64,000 nucleotides of DNA, taken from positions 106,722 to 170,721 of the forward strand of contig JAHDYR010000067.1 in assembly GCA_019828565.1 (NCBI GenBank), read 5' to 3'. Shown here piece by piece: positions 22,397 through 64,000 of this stretch (the first letter of the stretch is position 1; the number at the start of each line of letters is the position of its first letter). The position numbers were made by a program, and so were the translations under genes. Below the pieces are notes generated by a model. The model did not search any database, was not told where the DNA came from, and worked only from the letters and a program-made list of their open reading frames with translations. The stretch comes from Carpediemonas membranifera BICM (Eukaryota > Protista > Fornicata).

Positions 22397-22506
22397 TGTG
22401 GTCAGTCCTGGACACAAGGGAACCAATAAAGACTTTAGAGAGAATACTGCCATATCCTGCACCAAATGTGCAGGATAATACCTGTTGTGACCTGAGTCAC
22501 ACCACA
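22397..22506 (-). repeat. 3' LTR of outer element
   Basis: Identical to 55889-55998; TG..CA termini; PPT at 22507-22516. Confidence 0.92.
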
Positions 22507-34174: not shown

Positions 34175-34733
34175 TTACTTCTGGTGCTTTTCCTGCTCTC
34201 TCTTCTCCATCACGTCGTCATACTCGGCCCTCGTCAGCCTCACAGTTGTCATCCCGGCATCACGGATGTGCTCAAAGGCCTCAACGGGCAGCTTCGGCAT
34301 CCCGTCCTCGCTGTCGCTGCTGCTGCCCAAGTCTGACTCGCTCTCGTGATAGCGGCGAAGGCGAATGCGTCTGCTGGGCTCCCTGGTCTTCATAGCGTCA
34401 TAGAGCGGAGCGAGCCCACTTCCATTGGCCCCGCTACGGACACCCTCATCGGTATCTCTCTCAGACATATCACACTCAACCTGTTGTGACTGAACAAATG
34501 ACAGGTTGTCGACGAGGCTATCCTCGGCATCGCTGTCTGAACTCTCCTCATCCTCCCACTCTCCTTCCAGCATCTCCAACCCGGCCTCATCGTCAAACTC
34601 GCCCTCCACTGCGGTCTCCGGCATCTCTGCCTCGCCAGCTGTCTCGTCAAACAGCGCCTCATCGTCAGACTCACCCTCCCCTGTGTCGACCCCCATCGGG
34701 ATTACGCTGGTCGTGGAGCTGGACCATCCTCAT
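34175..34733 (-). CDS. acidic protein, copy 4 (extra base in C-run near 34690)
   Basis: Repeat-unit ORF; unit is 1097 bp. Confidence 0.5.
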
Positions 34734-35341
34734 CCTGAGCTTTTTGTAAAGCCACCAGGTCGGCAGAGCTTAAGGTAATCCTGGCGCCCTCATCCTGGCG
34801 CCTCATCCCTGGCGCCGTCATCCCTGGCGTCCTCTCCCTCATAAATCTGAATCATCTTCTTGTCTTGCTCCCGATGTTGTCATTGCTGTTTTCGTGTCCA
34901 CAAGCATTCCAGTCTCATTATAATGTTTATTCAGTACCAAATCATCCTTTAGTGACGGGCATTCTCATCTGCATTGCCGAGAAAAAGAGTTGATGTTGAT
35001 TAGATGGTGACGAATGCATTACCGGACATTTGACGCGCACAACCTGCTTAATACTGCATAAAAGCATCGCTGATCGCTTTCTCTTCTGTTCTTCAACGCC
35101 CAAGGAGCGGCTTCCAGGTCGGCAACGGTTGCCGACCTGGACCCGTGCAGTTTATGCTCGCAACCAAAGTTGGTCACAGTTTCAATGATACGTGTTAACA
35201 ATGCAACATAGACGGGTAAACACTGGTGTGAACTAATATATCCTCGCTAATTCACGTGACGTGAGTGATGTTGCACTTGTGACTATGAACAGACTCCTAG
35301 TTAATAGTACCGATCAAATTACCGAATACTTCATGTCATAT

Positions 35342-37290
35342 TTAGTTCTTACGTCTCCTAATCTTCACCTGGGTCGGCTTTGAGACCTTCCGCAAAGTTG
35401 CATGTCGACCCATCAACTGTATCACGTAGTTGATGTCGAGCCTGGCGCACTCCGCCCTAAAACTCTCCAGCGCTCTACTCTGATCGCCATCGAAGGGACG
35501 CCGCACTGTCAATGCATTGCCCTTCTCGTTACGGTAAATGTGCGTGATCATCTTCTCATCAATGTTGACAAGCATGGTCGGCTTCCCTGTCATCGAAGTC
35601 CACACTCTGATTGCTTCAACGCATGCCCATCTCGTCACTGTCCCGTCACTATTGACGTGCCCAGGAAACAGCTCATCCAGAAGCTCTATCTCTGTCATCT
35701 TTGAGAATACGGCCATGGTCCTTGCGTGGGCGAGGAGCGTCTGGCGGTAAGCTGTCGCCTCATCCTCAGCCTTGAGCTTCTGCGACAAGGGCAATTTGCG
35801 TCTGAACGCAGTAAATGTTCTCAGACCCGACATCATCATCAGGCAGTGAATGATGCAGTTCCCATAACCCAGGGTCGGATACGTAGGCCAACCTGAACTC
35901 GGAAGCCTTGTCGTGATGATCATGTCGAATGCCACAGTTCGGTTGTAGCGGGTTGGGTCAGACCTGGCGTTGACCACTCTTCCGCTCTCCTCGGTTTCAC
36001 CCTCCTCCTCTGCCCCACCCTCCTCGTCTGACTCGGCCTTCTCTTCCTCCTGCTCCTCCTCTGACTTACTCTTGGCCGGAGAGTGCTGTGCGATGATATC
36101 CTTCATCTCAGGCGTAAAGTTGAGGTCTATGGGGTCTGCCAGGTCATTCGGAGCGGTTGCTTGTGCAGACGCTGAGCAAACATCCTCGTCGTCGCCGGAG
36201 TTGCCGCCCTCGAGGTCGCCAAAGTGCAGCTCCTCCATCAACTCATCCGCCACTGGCTCCTCTTCCTCCTCTGACTCGACCTCCTCCACTGGCTCCTCTT
36301 CCTCCTCTGACTCCTCCTCCGAGTCCTCTGGCCTGGCCTTCTCGGGCGTGATGATGAGGGCCTTGCGCTTCACAGACATGGCTGCCTGCGCCTCGTCCGT
36401 ATCGCGTCGGGGACAGGAAGTCCTGGAGACTGTGCCAGACTGTGGCGGGATGGGGCTGCATGGGAGTGATGCATCCATGGACTTGTCAGCGTCATAGGCT
36501 GCCTCTCGCTCAGCCTGCTGCTGCAGAAGGCGTCGATGCAGCGTGATGACTTCCTCACTCTTTGCCGTCAAGCTCTTCCTCAACTGCTTGACTCTCTTCT
36601 TGTATCCTCGAACAATTTTGTGATAGTAATCGATGATAGCGCCAGTACCTGGGGGGAGCAGGGGCGTACCTTCTCCCGCGGGGGTCTCCAACCATTCCAG
36701 GGCGATGATGTACTCTTCGAAGTACGAGCGGCAGGAGTGCTTCATGTAAGCAAGGTCTGCCTCCTTGCTGCGCACCCTGGCAACCATTGCTGTGACATGG
36801 TCGCGCACAAGCGCGTTGGTGGATGTCGCGTTGCGCCACGCCCGAACCTTGACACTCAGCGCCTCTTTTTCGATACGCGCGCCCTCATTCTCCTTGGCAT
36901 ACTCAGCCCTCTTGGAGTTCTTGAAGGCTGTGACAGCGGCCGACTCAAACGCCTTCATCTCCTTCTCCGTGAAGGTTGCCTCGATGTTCTCGTTCGAGGT
37001 CTTATCCTGCACCTGCTGAGACAGCAATGCCTCGAGTTCTGCCTTCTTCTCGCCCTGAATCTCGAAATATGAGCACAGGTGGTTAAAGTTGATCCCTATA
37101 TAAACATTTGCACCAATTACGTACCGTTCTTGACGACTATATCGAAGATATCGTTCTCGTCGAGCAATTTGTCCCGAAGAACGGCACTCTTCGCCTTGTT
37201 TGTCTTCTTCTCCTTGAATTCGGTGATAACGGCCTCAATCACATCATCTGAGGTGCTCTCGATCCACTCGTGAAGGAATTCGAACGTCAT
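35342..37290 (-). CDS. coiled-coil + acidic + C-terminal OTU-like cysteine protease (intron 37096-37124)
   Basis: PTLGYGNCIIHC, W-x-loop (RWACVEAIRVW), IQLMGRHATL; 29-nt GTACGT..ATAG intron joins the 37117-37389 ORF in frame. Confidence 0.72.
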
Positions 37291-38074
37291 TCTTCTCTTC
37301 GTTATATCCCAATAATGGACATATAACAGAGATGAGAAAATTGCCAGTAACCGTAGGCAACGGGGTGTCGGAAACGTTATACCATACAAACGGGGGATAT
37401 AATCGCTCCGAAAACATCCATTATGTGGACTGAATGGCGATATAACGTATGGGGAGTGATCCGACGAGCTTTCGGGCGGTGCAGGCTAAGACACACCAAG
37501 TCTGTGGTGCTATAACGTACCTCGGGACGCACTGTGGAGGCCCCTAGAGTACTCGGTCATGGCATGTCAGACCAAGGGTCCCTCAAATCTGGCCCCATTC
37601 AGGATGCACCCCCTAAATGTTCCGTTGCAAGCGTCTGACGGGCGTTCTCTGGATACCGACCAAGATGGAGGTCACGTGGATGAACGGACGATAATTGCGG
37701 TATTCTGGCCATGCCTGGTACTCTCAAATCATCTGTACTGCTCTGTGCTCCATTTATAGTTCATATCGTTTCGTCCTGATGGACTTTTGGTACTTGATGT
37801 TGTTTAGAGATAATTGTTGCTTTAATGATGCTCTGCGCCCGCATACTGATGTTTCTTAGTGATATGTGCATGCCTGTATCGTTAAAGCCGCCAGTATTCT
37901 TCCTATTCTTCAGTTCGTCATTTCGGTCTCGTTGCGAGCATAAAGTGCGCGAATGCGCGGGTCAGTTCACCCGTTTTCAGCGAAGCTGATGCGACAACAC
38001 AGAGGCAAGCGAATCCTTACACCCCAGACGTCGCCAGGAGGCCGTTGTCTGCCAGGATCTATAAGCAGTGATGA

Positions 38075-38404
38075 GATATACGGATTTCAGACTTTCTGCC
38101 TGCACGACCTCAAATGTTGACTCCCCTCGGCACCGAAAAGGCACCTATATCCATGAATACCCTCTACAGTGATGTATCCACCCGATAAATGGATTTCAAA
38201 TTTGTCGGGTCTCATGATAAATGGATTTCAGACTTTCGTACTGTTGGCCATCTGAGAATTTATGAACGACCTCTAGAATATTTTGAAATGCAAGAACGTG
38301 CCTATGGCACTCTTTTGTACCCCTGAACACGGTTTGACCACTGTTTTGGGCATTTGGAGAGATTCGAATTTTTGTGCATGACGAAAGTCTGAAATCCGTA
38401 TATC
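38075..38404. promoter_or_regulatory. 22-bp perfect inverted repeat pair plus internal GATAAATGGATTTCA direct copies directly upstream of ORF 38406
   Basis: GATATACGGATTTCAGACTTTC at 38075-38096, reverse complement at 38383-38404; function inferred. Confidence 0.5.
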
Positions 38405-38405
38405 G

Positions 38406-39794
38406 ATGGAAGGAAGCCCGCAGGAGATGGAAACAACCATGGAAGCTGTAAAGAATGCTTGGTTGTGCACCATCAGCAAGAAATCTTCCCGGAAAGCGGC
38501 TGCAAACAACCTTTCGCGGTTCGTTCAATTCGTACAACGTGAGCGAGGGAGTACCGAGGACGAAGCGCTCTCCGTGATCCGATCCGAGGAGGTTAGATCG
38601 CTTGTGCCCGGTTTTGCTGCATCATTGAACAAGGCAACCGCTGCTGTCACTCTCAGTGCCGTCAACTCATTCCGAAACTCCGGCAGAGACAATGTCAAGC
38701 CGCTTGGGCAGTTTGAGCCTGTCGCATCGGAAGCTATTGTCCGACTAGTCTTCCCCTACAATGCGCTGGCTCTTATCATCAGCCACACGGGCATGACTGC
38801 CACATCAGCCCGCGATATTGATGTGAGCGAGCTCCAGATTCCCCCGGAACTCTCTGACTGGTTGCTATTCACCGGGGCACCATCTGCGATGTCCGCTGTG
38901 ATGCCTAGCACCTTCTCGCAGGCTCTCAAGTCGGTCGGGCTGAGTGTTAACCAGCTTCGCTATGCGCCCACTGTGCATGTCGATCTCAATCAGCTCAAGA
39001 AGCGGGTGATTGAGACACAAAGACGGACTGGCAGGCCCAGGGATCCGATCAAGGTTCGTAAGGTCATTAAGGACAAGCGCATCAGCCTGACCGATGAGCA
39101 GTTCAGGCATCAGTTGGCGTCCAGTCACTTAACGACCACGCGGCGCCCAACGATCCTCGATCTCAACCCGGAGATCCGAAGCTCTGCTGACCTGGTGCCG
39201 CCGACGCTCGATGACTGGCTTTACAACAAGCTCAGGATTAGGATGGTCCAGCTCCACGACCAGCGTAAGCCCGAGGGGGTCGACACGGGGGAGGGTGAGT
39301 CTGACGATGAGGCGCTGTTTGACGAGACAGCTGGCGAGGCAGAGATGCCGGAGACCGCAGTGGAGGGCGAGTTTGACGATGAGGCCGGGTTGGAGATGCT
39401 GGAAGGAGAGTGGGAGGATGAGGAGAGTTCAGACAGCGATGCCGAGGATAGCCTCGTCGACAACCTGTCATTTCTTCAGTCACAACAGGTTGAGTGTGAT
39501 ATGTCTGAGAGAGATACCGATGAGGGTGTCCGTAGCGGGGCCAATGGAAGTGGGCTCGCTCCGCTCTATGACGCTATGAAGACCAGGGAGCCCAGCAGAC
39601 GCATTCGCCTTCGCCGCTATCACGAGAGCGAGTCAGACTTGGGCAGCAGCAGCGACAGCGAGGACGGGATGCCGAAGCTGCCCGTTGAGGCCTTTGAGCA
39701 CATCCGTGATGCCGGGATGACAACTGTGAGGCTGACGAGGGCCGAGTATGACGACGTGATGGAGAAGAGAGAGCAGGAAAAGCACCAGAAGTAA
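38406..39794 (+). CDS. degenerate tyrosine-recombinase-like N-terminus fused to acidic tail
   Basis: LALIISHTGMTATSARDIDVSEL (box I-like, R->T), GLSVNQLRYA (box II-like), no catalytic Tyr region; last ~185 aa = amplified acidic ORF. Confidence 0.65.
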   Translation: MEGSPQEMETTMEAVKNAWLCTISKKSSRKAAANNLSRFVQFVQRERGSTEDEALSVIRSEEVRSLVPGFAASLNKATAAVTLSAVNSFRNSGRDNVKPLGQFEPVASEAIVRLVFPYNALALIISHTGMTATSARDIDVSELQIPPELSDWLLFTGAPSAMSAVMPSTFSQALKSVGLSVNQLRYAPTVHVDLNQLKKRVIETQRRTGRPRDPIKVRKVIKDKRISLTDEQFRHQLASSHLTTTRRPTILDLNPEIRSSADLVPPTLDDWLYNKLRIRMVQLHDQRKPEGVDTGEGESDDEALFDETAGEAEMPETAVEGEFDDEAGLEMLEGEWEDEESSDSDAEDSLVDNLSFLQSQQVECDMSERDTDEGVRSGANGSGLAPLYDAMKTREPSRRIRLRRYHESESDLGSSSDSEDGMPKLPVEAFEHIRDAGMTTVRLTRAEYDDVMEKREQEKHQK

Positions 39795-41229
39795 ATGGCG
39801 AGTGATTATCAACTGGATGCAGAGGCTGAGCGGCGTAACTAGCCTGCCAGGGTCCGTGTACACAGTATGTGTCTTGGCCAAGCTTGACTTCGTCGGTTGG
39901 CCGAAAAAGCATAAACTGCACGGGTCCAGGTCGGCAACCGTTGCCGACCTGGAAGCCGCTCCTTGGGCGTTGAAGAACAGAAGAGAAAGCGATCAGCGAT
40001 GCTTTTATGCAGTATTAAGCAGGTTGTGCGCGTCAAATGTCCGGTAATGCATTCGTCACCATCTAATCAACATCAACTCTTTTTCTCGGCAATGCAGATG
40101 AGAATGCCCGTCACTAAAGGATGATTTGGTACTGAATAAACATTATAATGAGACTGGAATGCTTGTGGACACGAAAACAGCAATGACAACATCGGGAGCA
40201 AGACAAGAAGATGATTCAGATTTATGAGGGAGAGGACGCCAGGGATGACGGCGCCAGGGATGAGGCGCCAGGATGAGGGCGCCAGGATTACCTTAAGCTC
40301 TGCCGACCTGGTGGCTTTACAAAAAGCTCAGGATGAGGATGGTCCAGCTCCACGACCAGCGTAATCCCGATGGGGGTCGACACGGGGAGGGTGAGTCTGA
40401 CGATGAGGCGCTGTTTGACGAGACAGCTGGCGAGGCAGAGATGCCGGAGACCGCAGTGGAGGGCGAGTTTGACGATGAGGCCGGGTTGGAGATGCTGGAA
40501 GGAGAGTGGGAGGATGAGGAGAGTTCAGACAGCGATGCCGAGGATAGCCTCGTCGACAACCTGTCATTTGTTCAGTCACAACAGGTTGAGTGTGATATGT
40601 CTGAGAGAGATACCGATGAGGGTGTCCGTAGCGGGGCCAATGGAAGTGGGCTCGCTCCGCTCTATGACGCTATGAAGACCAGGGAGCCCAGCAGACGCAT
40701 TCGCCTTCGCCGCTATCACGAGAGCGAGTCAGACTTGGGCAGCAGCAGCGACAGCGAGGACGGGATGCCGAAGCTGCCCGTTGAGGCCTTTGAGCACATC
40801 CGTGATGCCGGGATGACAACTGTGAGGCTGACGAGGGCCGAGTATGACGACGTGATGGAGAAGAGAGAGCAGGAAAAGCACCAGAAGTAAATGGCGAGTG
40901 ATTATCAACTGGATGCAGAGGCTGAGCGGCGTAACTAGCCTGCCAGGGTCCGTGTACACAGTATGTGTCTTGGCTAAGCTTGACTTCGTCGGTTGGCCGA
41001 AAAAGCATAAACTGCACGGGTCCAGGTCGGCAACCGTTGCCGACCTGGAAGCCGCTCCTTGGGCGTTGAAGAACAGAAGAGAAAGCGATCAGCGATGCTT
41101 TTATGCAGTATTAAGCAGGTTGTGCGCGTCAAATGTCCGGTAATGCATTCGTCACCATCTAATCAACATCAACTCTTTTTCTCGGCAATGCAGAGGAGAA
41201 TGCCCGTCACTAAAGGATGATTTGGTACT
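39221..41229. repeat. block C: inverted-orientation copies of the 1096-bp unit
   Basis: Reverse complement of block B units. Confidence 0.92.
40333..40890 (+). CDS. 185-aa acidic protein, copy 5
   Basis: Repeat-unit ORF. Confidence 0.6.
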   Translation: MRMVQLHDQRNPDGGRHGEGESDDEALFDETAGEAEMPETAVEGEFDDEAGLEMLEGEWEDEESSDSDAEDSLVDNLSFVQSQQVECDMSERDTDEGVRSGANGSGLAPLYDAMKTREPSRRIRLRRYHESESDLGSSSDSEDGMPKLPVEAFEHIRDAGMTTVRLTRAEYDDVMEKREQEKHQK

Positions 41230-41514
41230 AACAGGCTTTAATAAGCATGTCAAGCCTGTGATCACGATAACAGCCTTCAATAACTACATCAAGGCAATAC
41301 ATCAAGAAGATTGTTTAAAGAGACGGCGGGGAGCAAGATGCAGGGAGAGCGGCAGGGAAACGAAGGCATGGGGACAGGAGCCCGAGAAGAGCGCCTGGAG
41401 AACGGTGAGGAAGAACGGCGGGGAAGAGCAGCCGGGCGCATGGTACACACATCTGTCATCATGTGGCATCAACATTGCCACAGTGGTCAACTCAATAACA
41501 AGCAATGTCTTCAT

Positions 41515-42797
41515 TTACTCACTGTTCTGGATCACCAATTCGTACGACGAGTAACAGTCGGGACAGAGCCGAATCTTGGGAATCGACTTGCCACAGATGA
41601 CAATCTTCAGCAGCTCCATCTGTACGCAGTTGGCAGAGTTACAGAACCAGTGCCCGCACTGCCTACAGTGCACGGCTGAGTCGTTGCGTCGGCATGCGTA
41701 ACACTTCTTCTCATTGAGGCAATAGCTACACGTGTATTTCCAGCGACCCTTAGTGGACTCGGCCCAGTTCTTGTTCTTTCCAGTCTTAGGCCGGGGAGGG
41801 ACACAGCGTGAGTTGTCGTGGAAGTTCACTTTGCATTCCTGGCAAGTCACAAACTTTGACGTCACGCGATTGTCGATCCAGTCCAGACTGTGGCAATGGC
41901 CGCAACAGAAACAAAGCAGCCTATTCTGAATGTCGAGAATCGAGAAAGAATCATCACCGACCTCAGACACATCGTCATCGTTGTCCCCTTGGCTGGCCAG
42001 ACGTGCCTCCACGGTGGCGAGCCTCTGATCGACACTCATCGCGACACGGTGAACATCGTGCAGCACAATCGACTCGCGAGGCGCTTGAGGGGAAGCTGGA
42101 GAGGGAACCGAAGTGGGACCGGACGATGAGTGCAGGAAAGGCTCACTTTTCACGCAAAGCTCTTGCTTCACGTGTGTAAGGGCGGGGGTGGCAGGGTTGG
42201 GGATTTCAACTGTTCTGCACTTGCCCACAAATCTCTCCGGGTCATTGATATCGGGCACACAGAGATTAAAGTCTCGGGAGTCGAGATTATCTGGCACAGG
42301 AATATTGAGTCTCGACAGGACGGATCTGATCGCGCTGGTTAGCTCCGAACGGACTGGGCGAGGGAGCTCTTGCAGAGAGCATGGACAACCTTGGGTTTCC
42401 CGTCAGATATGGCCACAGTAACCCCCATCGTCTCAGCCCAATCTCGGACGTTCTTCGCAACAACCCTTCCCATCGAGACGCCAGGTTTCAACTTCAGCTC
42501 ATCGAGGAAGTCCGGTGTTTCGGAGCACGGCTGAAGAAACGACACGATGATGTGGTTGAACGCATTTCCGAGCTTTTTGATGGACAGGCCAGTTGGGTCT
42601 GAGTCAAAGACGTCAAACGCAAACGTGAAGAAGGCCTTAAGCATGCCCATCATGAGAATTGACCGGCAAGTACTCAAAGCGGTTGTGTTCCACTTCGTCA
42701 TCGGTCTCGATCTCTTAGAAACTGCCTTAACTGCATGATCGTCCGCCATGTTCTCATTTACGGCCGCGCGCTTCGTTTCTAGCTCCGTTTCTGTCAT
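41515..42797 (-). CDS. PHD finger + FYVE/ADD-like zinc finger protein (two ORFs joined by a short intron or frameshift near 42340)
   Basis: CFCC..FVTCQECKVNFHDNSRC..WKYTCSYC (C4HC3) followed by CYAC..HCRQCGHWFCNSANC..RLCPDC. Confidence 0.7.
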
Positions 42798-42987
42798 TCC
42801 AGAGTAGATTTTCTACTAAAAATTGGCATTGTTACAACCAATCATTAACATTAATAGAGAAGGAGAATAAAGACTCACCAGCCCGCGGCCAATCGTGACT
42901 CAGGTTCGCATCAGACGTCGACAGAGACGAGTTAAACATGAGGCTGGGCAATTGTCTTCTGAGCTAATCCTTAACCTTTCAAAGAGG

Positions 42988-45510
42988 ATGCTAATACCGA
43001 AGTGGACGCTATTACACGGCACTATTTATGCTCCTCAAGAGGATACTGGCATCAACACCATTCTATGCAGCGTGTACCTTTCCATTGACTCAGATAACGT
43101 CAGCACACATCGGTTTCGTGTTTCCAAAGCTCCCCAACGCCGTGAGTTCGTCCAGGTTGTTCAAGAGTTGCTCAGTGCAGGATATATATGTCGCCAGGAT
43201 GTTTCAAAGCAGCTGTACCCCTCTCCGACTGCCACATCTATCGCTGCGGAGAAGAGGAATCACACGACTTACCCAAGAGCCTACGTGAAGCATACATCCG
43301 CAGTTGACACTCTCGCAGCCGAGAATGAGTGTCTACGGAAGCGTCTGGCCGACACGGAGCGCCTGATTCAACTAACGAACCAGCTCAAGTCCATCACAAA
43401 CGGATACAATGCCGTTAACGACGAGATCCGCATAATGAACTCTCTTGCAGGTAGGCTTAACCTTGATATTGTGTGGATATCTCCTGTTACCTCGAAGATC
43501 AAGTCTCTCGCGTGTAATATCCAGAATATGGAGGAGATAGAATCACTTCTCCAATCTGACACCGCTTGGAGGAGATTTATCCGCAGTCACGTTCCCGCCA
43601 ACATTCAGCACAGGGTAACGGCGAGAAGGTCTGATCAGGCCAATCAGGAATATGAGCTCGACCTCATCACCCATGTCGAAGCTCCTCTTGATGTTGTACG
43701 ATCATCTATTCAGGGCGACTCGGCCCATGCAGAGCACGTTGCAGGAAAAATCGTCGTCTTCTATGACTCAGAGCAGGACCGTGAGACTCACTATAGCATC
43801 ATGAAAGAGCAAGGCCTCACCCCTCGGATGCAGACGAGTACAAGATATACCCATGTATATCATGCATCATTTGATATCATGGAGTATTATCGCCAAGCGG
43901 TTGCATTCCCCGTATCGCTGGAGACGTCACGATCCGGGCGCAAGAGTGCAGCTCGGACATTAAGACGACAGAGTCATTCCGCTGAGACGGGGACGATCCC
44001 ACTCGTGTTAGAGGTGTGGGTCGATGCGTGGAGAGGTCTGACAACCGCTGTTAAGATTCGTTTCCTCGACGACTCCCACAAAGTCTTTCCGTCTGGTGCG
44101 ACTCCTCCTTTCCGGATTCTTGAATACAACGGCCCAGAAAGTCTCATCACTGAGCACTTTGCCTTCATTGAACAATCCATCGAGAGCACACACCGCGAGG
44201 TGCTGGAAGTCAGGAACACGGGTCTCCTCTGCCGAGTAACGCGTGTCTTTATTATCGCAGACCATCCAGCCATGTCCAAGGTTTGCGGGGCACTCATTGG
44301 AGGCAATTACCCCTCGCCATTCAGTTCCGTTCATTCGAAGAACAAGGGCTGGAGTCCCTTTGGTCGCACCCCGCGCTGCACCTTGGCAGATATCCTGCTG
44401 GCGAAGCATAAGTCACAGTTCGACACTGTTATGGACAGAGAGGCCAAATGGGGATCCTTCTATAACCATCAGAAGAAGTGCATCGCTCCCACTTTGTTTG
44501 AGACGTCGACTGCATCGCTGCCCAGAGACTGCGTCTTCTTATTCCCTCCGATCATGCATGTCAGTCATGACTTTGTGTCGTTGATTCATGCCATGTGCCG
44601 CATGTTCAAGCCAGAGCCAATTGACCCAGACAGCGACCCTCGTCAAATTAAGGAGGTGAAGGCAAGGAACGCGATGCTAGCGAATCTGGCGTCGTTTGAG
44701 CCACCCAGCCGTACGACGGGCTGCAACGAGCAAGTCAAGGGGAGAAAGATGATAGCATCGATTGGACTTAAGCTGCATCGTGCGTTCCCGCCACCCGTGC
44801 AGTCATTATTCATACTCGCTGCATACCTCCAGGAGCACTACTATTCCCACGAGGATGTAACTGAGAACATGGTCGTGTGGCATCGCTTGACAGCACTTCT
44901 CGTGCACCTCTTCTCTGTGACCATGTGTCTTAGCACATCTAACACGGTTGCCCCAGACATTCCGATCCGTCAACCATCTGCGACTCCCGATACGGCGCCG
45001 TGTGTTGATACACTTCACGGATTGGCGCGTATTGCCGCGCTGCCGGAGATACAAGCGAAGACTCGGGCCTCCTTTGGTCGAGTCATCGAAGAGTGCTTTG
45101 AACGTGATTTCATTGGGAATCAGGAGAGTCGAGTGCGATTGCGTCAGAACCAGACGGTTCTTGAGAGCACTATTCTGAAGGAGCAGGTTGAGTTGCTGTT
45201 CAGATGCCTTCGTGGAGTGATTTCCTACGGAAGACGCGAAACAGATGTCCCACCCCAGTCACCCCTGAAACTTATGCGCATTCATAAGTGTTGTAAGGAT
45301 GCCAATTGGTGGCTTCGTATCCGGAGTGTGCATTCTAAGACGCTGACAGCGACTGAGTGCCAAAAAGCTGCACATGGTGTTTACGAAGGAAGTCAACGGC
45401 CTATGGCGCACTGTCTTGTCGAAAGCAGACTGTAGCTTTGACTCAGACTGGCTGGATGTTCCCATTCACGAGCAGGGACACACTCTTGATGTTTGCATAT
45501 GCAAGAGATA
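42988..45510 (+). CDS. DDE transposase, CMC (CACTA/Mirage/Chapaev)/Transib-RAG1-like; C-terminus probably extends by frameshift to 45510
   Basis: Putative triad EVWVD / IIADHPA..G..GGNYP / IEECFERDF, plus PPIMH; largest ORF inside the TIRs. Confidence 0.72.
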
Positions 45511-45709
45511 GTAAAGATCGGATTTAGTCTCGCGGTCAATCTCACGTGGCCCAGAGCAGCGTGCTCCTGGAATCAACAGGGCATAAAACACCCTGCGTAT
45601 TCCGGTAGCACACCGTTCTGACTCACGTCCGTCTCTGGTTGTCGTACAGGTCTATTTACGTGTTTGGCGATGGCGCTCCTGACATAAGCTTAATGGCGTG
45701 TCGTGGCTG

Positions 45710-45973
45710 TCAGTATGCTGCAAATGTCTCAGCGAGAAAGGAGTCACCAATCGCGTTCAGCTTACTTGTTTCTCGCCTGATACTGCTCGTAATATCGTTC
45801 AAGCGTGAATCTATGAAGTAATGGGACTGAATGGCCTCTATTGCGTCAATTTCCTGCGTAATCGTTGTTGAATGGTCTAGAATAGATGTTGCAGCTACTT
45901 CCAGCTCATGTTGCATGCTAAATGCTGTGTTTTTGGACAATTGGTCGTGTTCAGGCAGAATTTTTTCGTGCAA
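45710..45973 (-). CDS. small hypothetical coiled-coil protein
   Basis: 87-aa ORF with heptad pattern. Confidence 0.3.
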   Translation of the reverse strand: MHEKILPEHDQLSKNTAFSMQHELEVAATSILDHSTTITQEIDAIEAIQSHYFIDSRLNDITSSIRRETSKLNAIGDSFLAETFAAY

Positions 45974-46584
45974 AGTGCAGGCTAATACCCGTCCTTAAAC
46001 TGTGGGATCAGCCGCTGGGTAAATATACTGAGAAAAAACCATATAGCTGAGTTCACTGTCTTGTGCTGAATACGGTGGCGCCATTTATTTCTCTGAATCG
46101 TCAAGTTTTGTCAGCGTTGACCGCGCAAGACCGGTCGTCCTTACGCGATGTCACCAACACCATCATATTCTTCCCCCTGACATTCTACGTGTCCCCCAGT
46201 CTGGATTCGTGGTCTGCAATATTCACAGAGATATTCGCCTTCTCTTTCGCGAATTTGACTCTGATCAAGTCGAAAAACGAAAAAACGACCATATCTCGAA
46301 ATCTACACGTTGGAATCGGTACCAGAGTGATTTTGCGCATATGTACATCCCGTCAGCAGTCTGCAAAATCACTCTCGTACCGATTCCAACGTGTCGATTT
46401 TGAGATATTGCTCGTTTCATCCTTTTGCCTTAACCTGCGTCGCAAAGAAGTCGAAATCAGTGGTTAGACCGCACTGGACCTCTTGCAGGCTCTCTGCATA
46501 CGCGCTTTAGTATGCAATGAAGGTATTCATTTTCCCGTAAATTGTTTAAATTCAATGAATACTTCATTTTCGGTCCGGAAGAAA

Positions 46585-46658
46585 TAGATAATCTAGGGTT
46601 TTTAGGCCCTAGATTATCTAGAAAAAATCGTAGATTATCTGCCGACTTTCACAGTATG
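46585..46658 (-). repeat. right TIR of giant transposon
   Basis: Ends ...CTTTCACAGTATG followed by AA. Confidence 0.95.
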
Positions 46659-48250: not shown

Positions 48251-48372
48251 TGTTGTGGGTCCTACCCAAAGTTACACAGATTTACGTTATATTTAATAGT
48301 CAAGGAGTTTCTCCTCGACACCCTTGTGTCGAGTCTTCTCCTCAGTAAAAGTTCAACACCCATTGAACCACA
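48251..48372 (+). repeat. 5' LTR of chromovirus
   Basis: TGTTG...CCACA identical to 54074-54195. Confidence 0.96.
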
Positions 48373-48393
48373 GTACTAGTACTACCAAAACAT

Positions 48394-52330: not shown

Positions 52331-52372
52331 AACTTCTCAACATCGAAGCTATATCCTCGAGGAACAAACGAT

Positions 52373-53266: not shown

Positions 53267-54063
53267 GGTTGATGTTTGTTACTTACAGATTGTCGGTGAC
53301 CATGCGCTTGCGTCCACGATACTTCTGAGCGCGAAGGGAACGACAAACGGACGTATGGGCAACAATAAGTGGCCTAGCCAGATCGTCATCACCAAGTTCG
53401 GTGATTTTTGGCACGAATTTCCTTCAGAACGGCCTCTACGGCTGTGTTGTCCGACATCAAATGAGTTGACGGCGACATATCCTGCACATTTCTCGGAAAC
53501 GGTCGAAGGAACAACTAACAAGGTCATCTTAGTCTTCAAGCATGCATTTATTGTCGGTAATAAGGCATTAGGAGCTTCCTAGTGCTCCTTCCGGTCAGTT
53601 TGATGTTGTTATTCAAGTACAGTTGGACGCAGAAAATTAGAAGCCTCAGAACTCCTCAACGGAGCCGAATTGGAGCTTCTAAGTACGTTTTTCGGCGTCT
53701 GTGTGATTATGAGCGATAAGGGCTCAGCATTGGCAGTGTTTGCTAGAGCAATCGTTCTTGGCCTTCGAATTACATGGAATGGCATATAACACGTATAAGG
53801 TTTGTGAAGACGGCCTAGGAAGGCCGTGGAGGGGCAGTGGTAAGCCTTTCCGTCACGTTTCACCATTTTTGAAACAGAGCTCACATAGCGGTACCGCAGT
53901 TAGATCATGATACCATCATTTTGATTTCGTTCAGCTAGATGCGAAAGCACTCAGGCCATGGGGTTGCCAGCCCTATGAGTCACCGTTGGCGGTCGGGTGG
54001 CACCGTCCAGGCCTTTGGTGAAATGCTGACGTCAAGTCTCTCTGTCATGCCTATACCAGGCAT

Positions 54064-54073
54064 GGAGGGGCAG
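54064..54073 (+). other. polypurine tract of chromovirus
   Basis: GGAGGGGCAG abutting 3' LTR. Confidence 0.88.
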
Positions 54074-54195
54074 TGTTGTGGGTCCTACCCAAAGTTACAC
54101 AGATTTACGTTATATTTAATAGTCAAGGAGTTTCTCCTCGACACCCTTGTGTCGAGTCTTCTCCTCAGTAAAAGTTCAACACCCATTGAACCACA
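54074..54195 (+). repeat. 3' LTR of chromovirus
   Basis: Identical to 5' LTR. Confidence 0.96.
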
Positions 54196-55888
54196 GGGTG
54201 CCAGAGGCTGCTCGCCTCTATTGGCCTGAAGGTGTTGTACTGAGAGGATGGGCGCATCGCTGGAGGACGGGCCGACATGTGTTCGAGCTGCAACATGCTC
54301 GCGATACCCGTGAGTTGCTCGTCACGGGATGAGGTGATAATACGACCATACTAGACTGGTCGTGGTTTCGGTACAAGTCTCACAGAGGAAGGGACCCGTG
54401 AAACTACTATCTAAACTCGTTGAAGAGCTGCTATGCGCGGTAACGCTGCCCCTCCGCGGCTCTGAAGTACTTTGTGTTGTCGCCGCGTTGTTGTCTGATG
54501 ACTGTTGGTCTCGTGTCTACTAAATTGACTTCAAGCAAGGATGCCGGTCATGATAAGTGGAAGCTAAGTAATTACCTTACCTGAGTTTGGCGGGTAGCAC
54601 AGCTAGCCTTGACAAAAGTGCGAGCCATTGTTGCTCAAATGGAGATGCTCGCGCCATGGGGTGAACGATGGCAAGCGCGATACAGTTGACAGCAGATGGG
54701 GTGTCTGCCCAGGCTGTCGCGTACTGAGGATGTGGATGAGCAGCGGTCGAGCTTATCGTTGCTCTATGACGCTGGTTGCCCCTGACAGGGAATTGCGGAG
54801 ACGGTGGCGTGCTAGCTCTATTGGTTCATGCCGTGTTGCTGTACGTGGAAGGGACCTGCAAGCTGGCGAGTTCGCACATGTTCGGGGATAACTGGAGAGC
54901 AAACCTTGAAGCTGCTCAATACGGGTGCTGTTTCAGCACTGTGTGGATAGAAGGATATAACTGGCCGTCTAGGACCCACTGCTAGCAGTTACGTGCTCCA
55001 CATGCTCTGCTGAGCATTTGTTAGGAAGGTATACATGGCCTCATGTAGACATATAAATAGTGTGGATCGCTCCCACGACTGTAGGAACCGAGCTTGGTGT
55101 CCCCAGATGGGTCGTTACCTCTTTCGGTTTTTCATCGTCGATGATGGTAGTTGCCTGTCTGGCTTGGGCCATTGGCCCTGTGCCACGCTTGCTCATGGTC
55201 TGCTGGATGACCCGAATGATGTATGACTTGCTCTGGGCGCATGTGGCCAAGCTGCTACTTGCTACTCTCTAGGTAGCTCTGGATGATGGTTGGGGACGAT
55301 GATTCTGGAGGTCTACGTTGGTCAAAGTCGTGCGTGGGTCTGTCAGTGAGTCTACTGGGGTCACTGCCCCTTCTTGGCTTCTTCTCGCACTGTCTCGGGG
55401 TGTTCGATTTGGCTGGACGTGGAAGTGGCTGGCTCCTCGGCGTGGTTTTGGTTTGTTTTGCCTTTTGGCGGCTTTGGTGGTGCTTATTCCTGGTGCTATC
55501 TGCACTGTATCGGCTTGTGCTTGGCCTGGCCACTGGTCTCGTTGCTGGTCTCGGTCGATTGTCCTGAAGGAGCTTGATTGGCGCTCCAGAGCTGGTATTG
55601 CGGTGCTGTATCGTTTGTTGGAGCTTATTGAAGCTTGGTTACTGGTATTGGCCTGTTGTTTGCTTGTATGCTATAGTGCATTGGTGGAAGTTGATGGTCT
55701 TGTTGAACTAAACGCTCTAGACTTGTTGTTGCTTGCGAATTTCAGTTGAACTGTCGACACCGCGGAGACATTTGCATTGCGCTAACGGAAGAAATTGGTT
55801 CTGGTGAAAATGTCAATTGATGTTGCTTATATTGATTCTCCTGCGCCAGGACCGTTGAGCTCATCTCCTCCGGAAGAAATGATATCAT

Positions 55889-55998
55889 TGTGGTCAGTCC
55901 TGGACACAAGGGAACCAATAAAGACTTTAGAGAGAATACTGCCATATCCTGCACCAAATGTGCAGGATAATACCTGTTGTGACCTGAGTCACACCACA
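55889..55998 (-). repeat. 5' LTR of outer element
   Basis: Identical to 22397-22506. Confidence 0.92.
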
Positions 55999-56471
55999 AC
56001 GGGAACCCCGAGCTCCGCGATGATGACGGGAACCCCGAGCTCCGCGATGATGACGGGAACCCCGAGCTCCGCCGTGATGACGGGAACCCCGAGCTCCGCG
56101 ATGATGATGGCAACCCCGAGCTCCGCGATGATGACGGGAACCCCGAGCTCCGCCATGCCGCTGTGAACGGTTTCCACAGGCCTCAAGATGAGGTGGATCT
56201 CCGTCGCATGCCAGAACAACGCGTTCCCGAGCAGAATATGGAAGAAAATATGGCAGAAAACGGCATGCAACACGAGGATGACAGCTATGTGACCTGGAGA
56301 GACTTCCGTGCTTTCCAGGATGAGGTTCGTGGCCAATTTGCTGAGGTTCATGGCCAATTTGCTGAGGTTCATGGCCAATTTGCTGAGGTTCGTGGCGACA
56401 TTCGCCAGCTCAACGCCACAATCGAAGAGCTGCCTGGCAGGATTCTCGCCATGATCCACAATCGGGATTAA
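55999..56471 (+). pseudogene. 3' half of RDDDGNPE-repeat gene, with FAEVHGQ heptad repeats
   Basis: 24-bp repeats continue to ~56153, frame runs to stop at 56471; 21-bp repeats near 56321-56394. Confidence 0.75.
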
Positions 56472-57574: not shown

Positions 57575-58219
57575 ATGGGGGATTTCGACGCCGCTGTGGA
57601 AACTATTCTAAATCGTCTTACGACTAACACTTCGAGAATGCAATTTTGCCGTCTCCTCCGTCGCCATATCTCTGAAACTGGTTCCTACCTCGAGCTGTTC
57701 ACCCCTTACCAGCCGCGACGTGCTCCTAGGCGCCAAAACGTCCCTAATGTCCCAGAGGAACTTGCTGGCGCCGTAACCAGTTCTGCATCTGACAGCGAGA
57801 GCGTTAACGCCGTCGACCTACGCTACCTTCCGGCTTCTCCTGACCCAACCGACAATGAGTCTGACTCCGAGTCGGACGACACCCCGCCATCCCTCTCTGG
57901 CTACGTGGAACTCGTCACCCGGCAGGCAGTCAGCTACTACTGGAACTCTCCCCGGACTGAGTTACTGCTGCTCACCGACAACCGGCTGCACTCTTACACC
58001 CGCGCTTCCGCTGCAGTGCACTCGCATGACGCCGGCGCTGATCTCTGCCGTGACGCTATCGTACTCCAGGCGATGTCGGCTTACCTCTCCATACGTCGCG
58101 ATTCGACTGATGCTGCCATCGTTTCAGCCTACCTCACTGCTGTTCGAGACAACATACTGTCCAGGGTTCAGGAATTTCCCTTATTGGGTAGGGGAATTTC
58201 CTCGGGGGAAAGCCCCTAG
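57575..58219 (+). pseudogene. hypothetical gene truncated by insertion of the second giant transposon at 58153
   Basis: Last ~22 codons read through the CATACTGT terminus. Confidence 0.5.
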
Positions 58220-58652
58220 CATTTCGACTCGGTAAGAAAAAAAATAAATCAACAACGAGCTGTATTCATAATCTATAAATGAGGTTGAATACATGCCTAC
58301 ACATGAGGACTACTCATGCGTAGTTTTGAGCTTTAAATCCTGCTAGAAAAAAGTAACATAGGGACAATTATTCCTTGGGAGTTCAGACTCAAAAATCGGG
58401 CTGGGGGAGGAAATGGTCCATAAGTACGCCTTATGGGTCGCTTCCTCCTCTCTGCCCTTTTTATTGACTTCTGATTTGCCAGATTTGACACATGTTCGAG
58501 GTGAGTCTTAGATTACTCAAAATGGCCTCCTGATTCAGCAGATAGACTCAAAATTTCACAATTCGTACTCAAAACCAATTTCAACAGACGTCTGTTGCAA
58601 AATCTGCCAAAAACGCACTTTAAAGTCATTTTTGCAACAGACGTCTGTGGAA

Positions 58653-59905
58653 ATGGTCTTTAAGCTCTCCGCTGCCGATTTGACGCAACTACACAAGACT
58701 AACTACAGTAATACGTACATTGCCGACATTAGCGGGGTCAAAACTGTCGTCAAGGTCGATAACTGTATGACACTTCGCCTGACACACGAAAATACGATAC
58801 TTCAGGCAATGAAAAGCCCATTTATTGTTACAATCGTCGATGTGGGCTTTGTTGACAGCGATCAAGCGTTTGCCACTCGCTTTGTTGACCATATGTCGTG
58901 GCGAGACGTTCTGGCACTACCAGTACCGGATCAATGTCGCTACTTGCGGCACTTACTGTTAGCTCTCAGCCATGTGCATGAGAATGGATTCATCCACGGC
59001 GACATCAAGCCCGACAACTACCTTTTCAACCGAGAAGACGGTGGATTACTCATTGACTTCGGCTCTGCCATCAAAATAGAGGCTCCTACTGGGATTAACA
59101 GGTATATGGGACAAGACATGAGAGGGACACCTGGTTTTATCCCCCCGAGCTTCGTGCCGACGAACTCAGTCGGAAATCGAAGCATTGTACAGTAGCTATG
59201 CGGGAACCACAGAATTTGAACCCCTTCCAGGCTTCCAGGAACACCACAACCAGAAACACCAACATGCACACAGTTGATGCGGCATACGACATCTTTTCCT
59301 GCGGCGTTATCGTCCTCATGATGGCATTGCGACTGGATAAGTCTCCATTTCGATCTGTGAGAGTGGATGGTGGCAAGCCAAGTAACCCAGACGAGCATAT
59401 TGGCGCTCTATATAACATGGCGTACTTCTACGGCCGCGAAATCACGATACACAGCAAGAAGAAGAATGCAGCCCGTGGTTTGATGATCAATCCGACTCTC
59501 TGCACGAGAGGAAGCCCTCCGACACAGTATAGGAGCCTTTATGACCTTGCAATGGGGATGCTCAGCTATAATCCGGAGGATAGACCAACAGCTTTGATGT
59601 GCGCTGAACATCTCAACGATATCGCCGCCCTAGCAGCAACGTTCGCATCAACACCACTGATGATCAACGACCAGGTGACAATCTCTCAGGAAACGCTCGC
59701 TGCCGCCAAACTCACCGTTGAAGCACTTCGAGAAACCCGATTTGCTGGCCGATGCATTGCATGTGGCATGCCGGTTCACGATAATCGAACAATAACTTGC
59801 AAGACACACCACCAAGATTACAGAAGCATCATGAACCCCCACACAAAGAGAAGAGGACGAGTTTGGAGGGTTCATCGTGATCTATCATTGATTATTGATA
59901 TGTAA
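58653..59905 (+). CDS. Ser/Thr protein kinase, Cdc7/CMGC-like motifs (frameshift in C-run 59141-59146)
   Basis: TVVK, HEN, HGDIKPDNYLFN, DFG, RGTPGFIPP(E after +1 C), YDIFSCGVI, PEDRPTA; C-terminal CxxC..C..H. Confidence 0.85.
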
Positions 59906-60345
59906 CCGCCCAGTATCGAATCACCTCACTACCATGGGATGATCGCATTCACCTTCAAAGAAAGAGATGAGGCCGCATACTCGACCAGATATAAAGGAGA
60001 TATGCTGCAGCCTTGAAAAGAAAGAAAGAAAGAAAGAAATTTATGGTGCTTGGATTCTGACCCCCGGACTGAGCTTGTTTCCCGTGCTGCAGCCTTGCGC
60101 TGGCTTTATAGACAATACCCAGTTGTTTACACTAAAACCGAAAAATCAGTCCTCGAATCGAACTGGAGTGGGGTGGCTGTGATACAGTGTTCGTTCCTGT
60201 AGTACCCAGGCAGAAGACCCGACCGGACGATATGGCCTGGAACTCTACCGGCAAAAAGCAGCTGGCGGCCGCTGAGGGAATATGTGGAAGGCGCTTCCAG
60301 AATGATCTTTACACTACTTTCTTTGCTTCTATCTTGTACTTACTG

Positions 60346-62027
60346 TTAATCACTCTCATCATCTTTTTGTCTACTTGTGGATGACGGAGCGCCTTCCTGT
60401 ATTTGCGCTTTTCTTTTGATACCCTCTGGGAGACTGACAAGTTCCGCATGGTCGTCCTGGAGCAGAATAAAGTGGGTAATGCCATGTCTGGAACAGAACA
60501 CCTGGAAATTCTCACAACGATCAGCAGCTGAGTCGCCAGAAGGGTACAAACCCCAAAACTGGTGACCATGTGTGAACAATATCACTGTAGAATTATTACC
60601 GTTGTTGCACACCATGATGACATTACGCATGTAGATCATGGAAAACTCTCGCACAGCATCATCGGTAAGCCAGCCCATCTTGGAAAACAGTTCTGCCTTA
60701 GCGGAATCCTCCGTCAGAGCCGTCCGCTTCACCCGGCTTTCCACCAGCTCGGCACGCAAAGCCATGGCTGCCTCAAGATCTGTTCTGTGGGTCAGGGGTG
60801 GTCATATCCCGGAAATGGCCGTCCCTAATCATGCAACAGCAGTGCGCAACACAGCTGCCATCACGGTGTGTCGAGTATTTCCTCCATGACTTCAACCCAT
60901 TCACAATTTCCTCAACGAAGGACTGTGGCTGACCGCTGGTGCCGATTGGAATCTCTTTCTTCTCAATCATATTGTTGATGTGAGACTCAATGGCCACAGA
61001 TGACTCGTGTTCAGACTTGATCAAGAGCAGAGAGCGAAAGTCGACGATCTTAGCAGTGGAATCGAAGTTCGGGTACGCAGGCCGGTAAACCTTGTTAAGC
61101 AAAGGATAACAACGCGGCGGGAGTCTTGCGTCTTCCTCCGATACGATCTTCGCTTTTGCACAACCGTCAGGTCTTGCGATAATGACTCTTCGCTTCATGT
61201 ACGAGAGCTTGGACATCCAGAACCAGAATTGCGCGATCTCATGGAGGTGATCTGGCTGAGTCATGATTCTGATGAGCCACGTGGCGTCATGGGCGGCAAG
61301 TTCGACGGCGGGTAGCTCATCTGGTGTCAAAAGCACCACACACCGTTGCATTGTGAACTTGAACTTGCCAGAATACAACTGAAAGATCGGCCGTGGGTCA
61401 CGGGCGGAAGACTGGCAGGCGGCAATATACACACCCATGATTCGGGCGAACTTGCAGACATGACTCTCATAATTCTTCAGAATTGCCTCGATGAAGTCGA
61501 AGGCAGTTGTCCAGATGGCTGGTATCGTGCGGGCATCGACCACAAACCGACCATCAGAGTCCGAGTGACCAGTGATAATGAAAAAAAGTCTCATAGTCAC
61601 CATACAGCTTGCCGAATTCCTTGATTTTCGCCTCAAAATCGTCCTCGTTCTCGAACTGGGCCGTCTCGATAACCGTATACTCGCTATGCATTGCCGCAAA
61701 GATCTGACGAATGCGTTCTGCGTGCCCTCCAATGGAGACAGATTCATCAATCGAAAACTGCCTGCTATCTCCAGCAACGAACCCATAGGTTGGCTCGAAC
61801 ACGATGAGGACACGTGTATTCTTCAGCGCCAGTGCAGTACGGGTGCACTTGTGACGTCGGGATGGCGAGGGAAAACCGACGTTGCGTGTTTCGCTACTGA
61901 TGTCCCCACAGACACATTCAAACAGCTTTGATCCATCCAGATATCGATTTCTCCACCCCATTGCATTGAAAAATGTCTGATCGTCGTTCATGACGCCAAT
62001 GCCAAATTGAGGGTGAGAAAATGGCAT
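60346..62027 (-). CDS. caspase-like (clan CD) protease fused to OTU-like protease (frameshifts near 61584 and 60796)
   Basis: RVLIVFE..HAERIRQIF..FFIITGHS..YIAACQS; then RDGSCVAHC..GWLTDDAVREF..ILLQDDHAELV. Confidence 0.68.
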
Positions 62028-62088
62028 CGCACTTTAAAGCAGCTTTATGTGAGAAATGTATTGCATATAATTCTGCATTCAGAAGACG

Positions 62089-62971
62089 ATGGCTAGAACA
62101 AAGCAAACGGCTCGCCGGCCTACGCAAGGTGGAAAGGCGCCTCGCAAGCAGTTAGCAGCGATAGCTGCGCGGAGAGCAAATACTTCGTCGTACCGCACCT
62201 ACAAGCCGTTGTCTCAGGCCGCGTTGGAGAATTGCACGGCAGTCCTGCAAAAGGCTGATGCTGATATCCAAGAAACTATTCTGTCGTGCATCAAAGAAGA
62301 CGGAGGCGCACAACTTCAAGCAGATGGTCAAGAATTCAACACGAGCTGGTTTCCGACTTGCATTCAACACTGAGTCCGAGTCTGTCCACATGAACCCATC
62401 GAGGAAGGACGAGGTGGCAGCGCGGGCAGAAGCTGCTTACCAATCAGCGCTGCATGCCTTCCGCAGCGTTGACCCTGAGACTGCTGCGACAGAAGATATG
62501 AAGACACTGCTTGACACCTTAGCGGTTGCTCTTGACGCAACGCCAGATGTGCCACATGCTCGCCTGGATCCTGAAGAACAGCGTCGGTTCCTGAAGCTGA
62601 AGGATACGAAGAAATTCTCCAAGTACTGCCTTCCTCGCAGTGACGAGAAGTTTTTCTCGACCAATCTTCGCGCTGCCTTGCGCGAACACCTGGCGAAGGT
62701 GTTTCCAAACCTCCCTTGGAACAAGATTGTCTCCTGCTTCTCCCCTGAAGCGATCAATGCTGATTTCTTTATCCTGTCCACGAGCAATGCCACCTACGAC
62801 GAAGCTTGCCTGACAATGCCGTCTGATGAGAGAAAGAAGCTTCGCAACCATCTTTCCATGACTGAAGAACGGCAGATTGCTCGTCAAGAGATGGAGGTTG
62901 GGATTTACCAGTTTTTAAAGAGAGCTCGGTATGTTCTCTACGGTGTAAAAGATGCAATTGTTGACCATTGA
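62089..62971 (+). CDS. divergent histone H3-derived protein (K9R, K27R), apparent frameshift near 62226
   Basis: MARTKQTARRPTQGGKAPRKQLAAIAARR; removing one G gives YKPLSQAALRIARQSCKRLMLISKKLFCR, aligning gap-free to H3 [29 protein letters not shown]. Confidence 0.78.
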
Positions 62972-62987
62972 CTCGATCAGCGCGCCT

Positions 62988-63804
62988 CTAAACCCCACTA
63001 TTCGAAGGCGTCTCTGCGGGCTGAAGAGACATAAAGGTTAAAAACAGTTTAAGGAACTCGTCCAACGTCTTCGCATTGTGCGTCATGGCCACCTTGTCCT
63101 TCTTCGTCAACCTCGATTTGGTACCCTTTCTCTTCACAGTCGTCTTCTTCTTCTTAGAAGGCTCCCAGCTCCCCATTGGCGCATGCTTTTTCTTAGCTTC
63201 TTCTGCTCTAATCTGTACTTCTCCTCCTCCGTCATGTCTGCTTCCTTTTTTTCTTTTGCCTTCGCCTTCTTCTTCGACTTCATTACATCTAACTTCTTCG
63301 CCTTCTCTGCATCCTCCTGGACCACGCGAGAAATTGAGTGCTTCACGTCCTTCGGTACATCACGATTCCTCGCATGCTTAACCACGACAAAGACATTATC
63401 GTCAGTGCCGCCACCTTCAAGGATGACCTTGTCCTTTGGGATCTTGCTGGTGGCAACCAAGAAGCAGATCGGCTTCTTATCCACCTTGAATAGGGCAAAC
63501 CTGCAGTTGCCAGCAGCCGAATGATGGCAAAAGCTTGTTGACGCATGCTTCATCAGGAGTCATGAGGGTGCAGCTGTGACGATAGCTGAATCCGAGAAGG
63601 CTGATCGCTAAGAACACCCTTGGCAATCCCGAGCACTTCTCCCTCATCAACATCGCCAGCCGTGACCAAACCATACATCATGTCATCGCCCTTTGACACC
63701 ATGCATGTGCTGCACTTCAGAGAAATGAGCGATTGGCCGTCAAGCTCGACAATTTGGTCATCATCGAAAGGCAAGGCGTCTATCTTCATCGCGGCTTCGC
63801 CCAT
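62988..63804 (-). CDS. divergent SET-domain protein with Lys-rich tail (frameshifts; 5' end may lie further upstream)
   Basis: YGLVTAGDVDEGEVLGIAKG, SFCHHSAAGNC, FLVATSKIPK; in-frame upstream WNCQLC may be the end of a PHD finger. Confidence 0.62.
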
Positions 63805-64000
63805 GTCCGCCCAATTTGCATAGACACGACGCGCAAGCTCTTCCGGAAAGCAATCGCAGCAAAGTTGACAGTTCCACTTTCTTGCTGCATTCTACGCAGT
63901 TTATACCAGCAGTTTATACGCAGCAATGACACAGCACCAAGAGCGTGGCACACAACCCTTCAATGACCCATGTAAGGTTGGGTGGGTCTTATGTCAGGCT

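Follow-up and report, generated by a model that had tools for sequence, protein, structure and literature searches.

A probable cut-and-paste transposon of a RAG1/Transib-like family with chromatin-related cargo in Carpediemonas membranifera

We analysed a 64-kb window of the Carpediemonas membranifera genome (contig JAHDYR010000067.1, about 106,722-170,721), in which a mobile element of subfamily E, element 2, starts at window position 58153. The element is probably a cut-and-paste DNA transposon, 16.7 kb in length, from an apparently undescribed lineage of RAG1/Transib-like type, and its cargo may counter host silencing. The evidence consists of its boundaries and terminal inverted repeats (TIRs), a linked transposase with a conserved acidic triad, a recent duplication, and 2-bp target-site duplications (TSDs) in its relatives. 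The cargo has been long retained and exchanged. Positions below are those of the window unless another sequence is named; L numbers are our own locus handles.

Ends of the element, its sibling copy and the family

The left end of element 2 is composed as follows.
57575..58152, + strand: open reading frame (ORF) broken by the insertion; the frame runs on into the TIR up to 58219
58151..58152, no strand: left flank AA, candidate 2-bp TSD on the basis of the 2-bp rule from four complete relatives
58153..58160, + strand: invariant 8-bp terminus CATACTGT, left end of the subfamily E element, at which homology to the sibling copy begins
58153..58216, + strand: left TIR of the window copy; 75 nt in the sibling, with an 11-nt deletion/inversion in the window copy that removes box 3
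58171..58179, + strand: palindromic box 1, GGAATTTCC, centre +23
58193..58201, + strand: palindromic box 2, GGAATTTCC, centre +45
58290..58504, + strand: subterminal block also present at the left ends of A (82%) and B (83%) elements

Position 58153 is almost certainly a transposon end, because homology to a second copy of the element (the sibling), on contig JAHDYR010000069.1, begins at exactly this base and the flanks differ. From there the two copies are 99.06% identical over 5878 columns, and their flanks are unrelated. The 8-mer alone was rejected as a marker of termini: the window holds 10 copies of CATACTGT against 1.45 expected, with seven inside an internal 1.1-kb repeat of element 1, a subfamily A element of the same window, and the other three at the ends of element 1 (23921 and 46658) and at 58153. 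Chance-like matches were also seen at L005 12212 and L006 16864.

The first-pass annotation, made from the sequence alone, had proposed that CAA plus the 8-bp terminus recurs at 58153, followed by TIR sub-repeats unlike those of element 1 and about 270 bp of subterminal homology to it. CAA directly precedes CATACTGT (58150-58160), and GGAATTTCC is found in the window only at 58171 and 58193, whereas element 1 carries AGATAATCT boxes at nearly the same offsets (+23/+44 against +23/+45); odd palindromes of this type occupy 0.4% of positions (chance about 0.004 per position). The subterminal length is about right: 58290-58504 aligns with 24058-24277 of element 1 at 82% over 221 columns, weaker likeness to the left end of element 1 reaches about 58240-58530, and the left end of a B-type element matches the block at 83%. 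This block is a probable promoter or regulatory region. Searches found no homologue of the ORF at 57575..58152.

The sibling is 16,733 bp long, contains transposase P0027 and has a 75-nt TIR with one mismatch, terminating in ACAGTATG. Its TIR carries three boxes (+23, +45 and +70), the third of which was lost from the window copy through the 11-nt deletion/inversion. The gene order is kinase, caspase-like/OTU gene, H3-tail ORF, SET gene, B-type kinase fragment, unknown ORFs, PHD gene (Pfam E 4e-5), 464-aa ORF, transposase and right TIR. The transposase lies about 1 kb inside the right end with its coding region in pieces, which are 30-51% identical to P0003, the transposase of element 1 (N-terminal half about 30%, core about 40%). 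Thus both a matching right TIR ending in ACAGTATG and a homologous transposase, which had been named among the things to look for downstream, were found on a 99%-identical sibling. If the copies are collinear, the right end of the window copy is predicted near 74,860 (about record position 181,580).

The two copies differ by 8 substitutions (about 0.1%) and 26 indels, of which 22 lie in homopolymer runs. The kinase, caspase-like/OTU and SET genes are open in the sibling (418, 559 and 281 aa) and broken in the window. With all cargo genes of the window copy frame-broken and box 3 of its TIR gone, the copy might be a truly decayed relic instead of a mis-polished recent one, but the ratio of indels to substitutions, their homopolymeric sites and the different break sites in the two copies speak against decay, as does an assembly built from R9.4 nanopore as well as Illumina reads (PMC8516963), and we regard a relic as unlikely. 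The breaks in the window genes, nearly all homopolymer indels, are probably assembly errors, and we infer that the two copies represent a recent duplication with residual nanopore errors. Frame-broken genes were searched piecewise or via the naturally open sibling ORFs, never as joined or frame-corrected models.

The element belongs to a family of at least seven transposase/TIR subfamilies in C. membranifera (A, B, C, D, E, G and H) plus one element in assembly GCA_002919055.1 (L014). All members have the termini CATACTG..CAGTATG; the seven subfamilies start with CATACTGT and L014 with CATACTGC. A profile search with the element 1 transposase returned 19 matches among 1.84 billion representatives, several of them from C. 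membranifera, and the E TIR has no match in the Joint Genome Institute (JGI) metagenomes. In four subfamilies, specific palindromes stand at +23, +44/45 and +68-70: AGATWATCT in A and B, TTGACTT-N-AAGTCAA in D and GGAAWTTCC in E. C, G, H and L014 have other box arrangements. A quick tree of 15 proteins and one E piece, from which P0018 and P0031 were excluded as mis-modelled, made A and B sisters (support 100), as well as C and H (support 100), with D and E joining A+B (97). Sister transposases have common TIR sequence and boxes (A+B, C+H), and these two pairs fit transposase/TIR co-evolution.

Complete elements are flanked by AA/AA (element 1), GA/GA (L005), CC/CC (L013) and GC/GC (L014), so that a 2-bp TSD is present in four of the five, the exception being the E sibling. 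Removal of L014 together with one GC restores the interrupted RNase H frame of a retrotransposon. The TSD is 2 bp and variable in sequence. A fixed AA target site, as the AA flank had suggested in the first-pass annotation, is rejected since GA, CC and GC are also duplicated; that AA adjoins both elements of the window reflects either chance (1 in 16) or a slight preference.

Cargo genes and their exchange among subfamilies

Four cargo genes of element 2 lie in the window; searches found no record of any element 2 ORF of the window.
58653..59905, + strand: Ser/Thr protein kinase with a C-terminal Cys-rich tail; frame break near 59140, 418-aa open ORF in the sibling
60346..62027, - strand: fusion gene, caspase-like (motif only) and OTU-like; breaks near 61580 and 60793, 559-aa open ORF in the sibling
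62089..62971, + strand: ORF whose first part (about 62089-62178) mimics the N-terminal tail of histone H3, followed by an unrecognised domain; frame-broken in both copies
63038..63890, - strand: degenerate SET-domain gene; several 1-nt breaks, 281-aa open ORF in the sibling

The identity of the kinase is solid (Pfam E 5e-17 in the window, 1e-22 in the sibling). It is 32% identical to the subfamily B kinase, and its best PDB match is Cdc7 (E 3.7e-9), marginally ahead of ROCK1 (8e-9). The OTU assignment is supported by a profile match to OTUD3 (E 3.9e-5) and by a putative D-G-x-C catalytic loop, in which D, G and C are invariant in three homologues. The caspase-like assignment is drawn from motifs, namely GH and A-x-C invariant after hydrophobic strands in four homologues at 23-27% identity; a single-sequence structure model of the caspase-OTU protein was unusable (predicted local distance difference test, pLDDT, 34).

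The H3 match is limited to residues 1-30 (at most about 50). The mimic keeps K4, K14 and K18, and in the sibling frame K27, and has K9 and S10 replaced. No histone fold was detected after the tail, and the downstream pieces have no histone match; a full histone H3 was thus rejected. The SET domain of E gives a Pfam E of 0.09-0.11 and does not have the canonical C-terminal Tyr motif that its homologues in C and D (1e-11 and 2e-4) keep, and it is thus possibly a pseudo-enzyme. Of the cargo proposed at first pass (kinase, caspase-OTU, H3-like and SET), the kinase and OTU parts were upheld, whereas the caspase part stays at motif level, the H3-like part is reduced to a tail and the SET part is weak and degenerate.

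A 464-aa beta-rich ORF (L009 8355-9746) lies between the PHD gene and the E transposase, and a homologue lies just upstream of the G transposase. A Kelch/RAG2-like reading of this ORF found no support and no family match.

Across the family, PHD genes occur in A, B, C, D, E and L014, SET in A, C, D, E and L014, OTU in A, C, E, G and L014, caspase-like domains in C, E and L014, kinases in B and E, and the H3 tail in E only; by eye, a GNAT-like module is seen in C and chromo-like modules in A and D. The matrix is incomplete for B, D, G and H, which are known from partial elements. The core is a transposase plus a PHD gene in six subfamilies, with SET, OTU, caspase-like, kinase, GNAT-like, chromo-like and H3-tail modules swappable around it, and the elements span 11-23 kb with many cargo genes. 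The proposed diversified family with modular cargo is borne out by the seven subfamilies and the GCA_002919055.1 element, and its proposed difference in cargo from element 1 in part: SET, OTU and PHD are common to both. L014 (2171-13799) is a complete, apparently intact 11.6-kb relative with transposase, OTU, caspase-like, SET and PHD genes.

Family members are nested inside one another, and E holds a stretch of the B kinase at 82% identity, a sign of cargo exchange. The modules have persisted, with 23-32% identity between subfamilies and to those in a second assembly and with their putative catalytic residues intact, which points to selection on the cargo. Passive Pack-type capture of host DNA, with no role for the element, would accommodate cargo that differs among subfamilies, the broken B kinase fragment in E and the broken frames in many copies. 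We consider it improbable: deeply separated transposase branches, and another assembly too, hold the same modules with long open frames and the putative catalytic residues retained, and when the caspase-OTU and H3-downstream ORFs were used as queries, neither a close source among host genes nor homologues came up.

Transposase lineage and a model for the cargo

In the transposase, every ungapped row of the family keeps D346, D425 and E701/702/705, which are putatively catalytic. The top-probability Foldseek matches of its structure model, a weak one, were RAG1 (0.91) and HzTransib (0.77); the transposase likely has RAG1/CMCT-like chemistry. The CMCT clade comprises EnSpm/CACTA, Mirage, Chapaev and Transib along with Plavaka, ESTA and Lanisha, and its hallmarks are CA..TG ends, a 2-5-bp TSD and the two motifs C(2)C and H(3-4)H (PMC12730594). 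The C. membranifera family resembles it in its 5'-CA..TG-3' termini, a TSD within the 2-5-bp range, a DDE-like triad and the RAG1/Transib-like fold matches of the weak model. It differs in that its C(2)C motif is cut to one Cys or none and H(3-4)H is not conserved, and also in that it matches no CMCT family in Pfam and has only the 19 relatives noted above. An MH(2)SH motif lies earlier in the transposase than the H(3-4)H region. The elements probably work like the CMCT/RAG1 type but are not filed as a CMCT member, because both zinc motifs are degenerate and there is no transposase Pfam match, though ends and TSD fit.

Several observations weigh against our interpretation. The structure model of the transposase is of low quality (pLDDT 42; template-modelling score about 0.2; Foldseek E about 2e-3), and no Pfam or PDB sequence match was obtained (Pfam scan, 17 members). 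At the first position of C(2)C, 6 rows have Cys and 5 have Ser, at the second 1 row has Cys, and at most one His, not conserved, precedes the putative catalytic Glu at H(3-4)H. C, G and H depart from the +23/+44 odd-palindrome rule. The right end of the window copy lies outside the 64-kb window and is predicted only. The sibling is flanked by CT/GG, and the retroelement on its left does not resume on its right; this mismatch is consistent with an adjacent deletion, recombination or mis-assembly, and a flank swap between the two E copies was rejected as its cause, as the right flank is GG and not AA. Among the cargo, the caspase-like domain has no significant sequence or fold match in databases, and the E-type SET appears degenerate and weak.

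Other transposons offer partial parallels. The fungal PlavakaB elements also have termini starting with CAT, a possible 2-bp TSD and epigenetic-enzyme cargo (TET/JBP), but their termini are CATCA..TGATG against CATAC here, none of 17 members of the present family has a Plavaka Pfam match, their cargo is DNA-modifying and not histone-directed, and the present family is found in a metamonad. Transib/RAG1 (ProtoRAG) gives the best structural matches and shares a short invariant end with spaced binding boxes; moreover, most C. membranifera elements carry a PHD gene, reminiscent of the PHD of RAG2. Unlike Transib, with its 5-bp TSD, this family has a 2-bp TSD, symmetric TIRs with subfamily-specific palindromes, and 11-23-kb elements with many cargo genes. 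Chromatin-enzyme cargo is known from SET-carrying HarbingerS/MuDR elements of Phytophthora, VANDAL anti-silencing elements, and Plavaka and other TET/JBP elements (PMC12730594). HarbingerS/MuDR and VANDAL are likewise DNA transposons whose chromatin regulators are presumed or shown to counter silencing, but their transposases are unrelated and they carry mainly one regulator per element, in contrast to the multi-module kit here, with its H3-tail mimic, OTU, kinase and caspase-like domain.

We propose that the transposase would cut at the common CATACTG(T) end, as expected from DDE chemistry, and would choose ends of its own subfamily via the palindromic boxes, which are 21-22 bp, about two helical turns, apart. 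This layout would resemble a recombination signal sequence (RSS) heptamer with a spaced binding site. By editing host chromatin marks or offering decoys for them, the cargo may keep the element accessible or expressed: the decoy could be the H3 tail, in which K4, K14, K18 and K27 are kept and K9 and S10 replaced, OTU could be a deubiquitinase, and PHD and SET could serve as readers or a pseudo-writer.

We lean slightly towards such an anti-silencing role of the cargo. Alternatively, the cargo might be selected for functions outside silencing, in cell cycle, replication, host signalling, an addiction system or an anti-competitor system. The Cdc7 match of the kinase would suit this in a host that has lost the origin recognition complex (ORC) and Cdc6 (PMC8516963), and caspase-like and OTU proteases are not chromatin-specific, but Cdc7 is barely ahead of ROCK1, and the H3 tail, PHD, SET, chromo-like and GNAT-like modules all indicate histones; we give this alternative a minor share of belief. 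An endogenous DNA virus or Polinton-like element appears extremely improbable. Size, TIRs and the kinase, OTU, SET and histone-like genes, which are common in large DNA viruses, would agree with it, but no capsid, packaging ATPase or polymerase B match was found among the ORFs scanned, the TSDs are 2 bp where those of Polintons are about 6 bp, and no transposase relative was found in IMG/VR, metagenome contigs or BFVD.

Beyond the proposed anti-silencing transposon, a bolder version is tentative. The family could be a new superfamily-level RAG1-like lineage that lost the CMCT zinc motifs, in which TIR palindromes were swapped together with the DNA-binding region of the transposase under a constant 8-bp cleavage signal, and which carries a multi-enzyme chromatin kit including an H3-tail decoy; its Cdc7-like kinase might even touch replication in the ORC-less host.

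Single chromatin enzymes are known as transposon cargo. The literature searched (without most subscription papers and Repbase) contained no family whose members, of those examined, nearly all carry a different histone-directed kit of several genes, an H3-tail mimic included, and no description of the C. membranifera family or of a transposon-borne H3-tail mimic. The string 'transpos' is absent from the C. membranifera genome paper (PMC8516963). The pairs of transposase and TIR, which combine several binding boxes with a single cleavage motif, form a natural series in which the evolution of end recognition in RAG1-like enzymes is testable. The family also hints at active chromatin-level conflict in C. 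membranifera, an organism already noted for the loss of kinetochore parts besides ORC and Cdc6.

Element 1 and other features

Element 1 provides the family reference within the window.
23921..46658, + strand: element 1, subfamily A, 22.7 kb, with a 74-nt TIR, an AA/AA TSD and SET, OTU, chromo-like and PHD genes
42988..45435, + strand: element 1 transposase P0003, family reference

P0003 departs from the family frame near residue 794 (window 45362-45508), while its copy P0005 stays in frame, and the annotated tail of P0003 is probably a frameshift product. Inside element 1, a 1,096-bp unit forms tandem and inverted repeats (28009-35158 and 39216-41229). Like the true ends, each unit has CATACTGT and then, centred at +23, an odd palindrome; it also contains a 29-nt perfect hairpin and is possibly a miniature or relic member of the family. 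Long hairpins with imperfect pairing are found repeatedly, both between genes and a few hundred bases inward of the element ends (L009 13161-13296; window 46291-46408 and 58578-58654).

An unannotated short reading frame, about 40% identical over 56 aa, is common to A, B, D and E (window 45734-45901; L009 6492-6869). Another ORF is common to A, B and G (window 38382-39791; L003 14483-15718; L008 near 4295) and resembles by eye the N-terminus of a tyrosine recombinase, without Pfam support.

A Dam-like methyltransferase gene lies beside a reverse transcriptase (L002 16183-21075), a theme of preprint 10.64898/2026.05.21.726589. The window also holds a Ty3/gypsy-type long terminal repeat (LTR) retrotransposon (48251-54196) with identical 123-bp LTRs and an additional antisense ORF (52373-53266). 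Finally, a 27-bp tandem repeat adjoins an identical 110-bp segment at 22300-22506 and 55889-56171, with the order of the parts swapped between the two sites; the pair is perhaps another mobile element.

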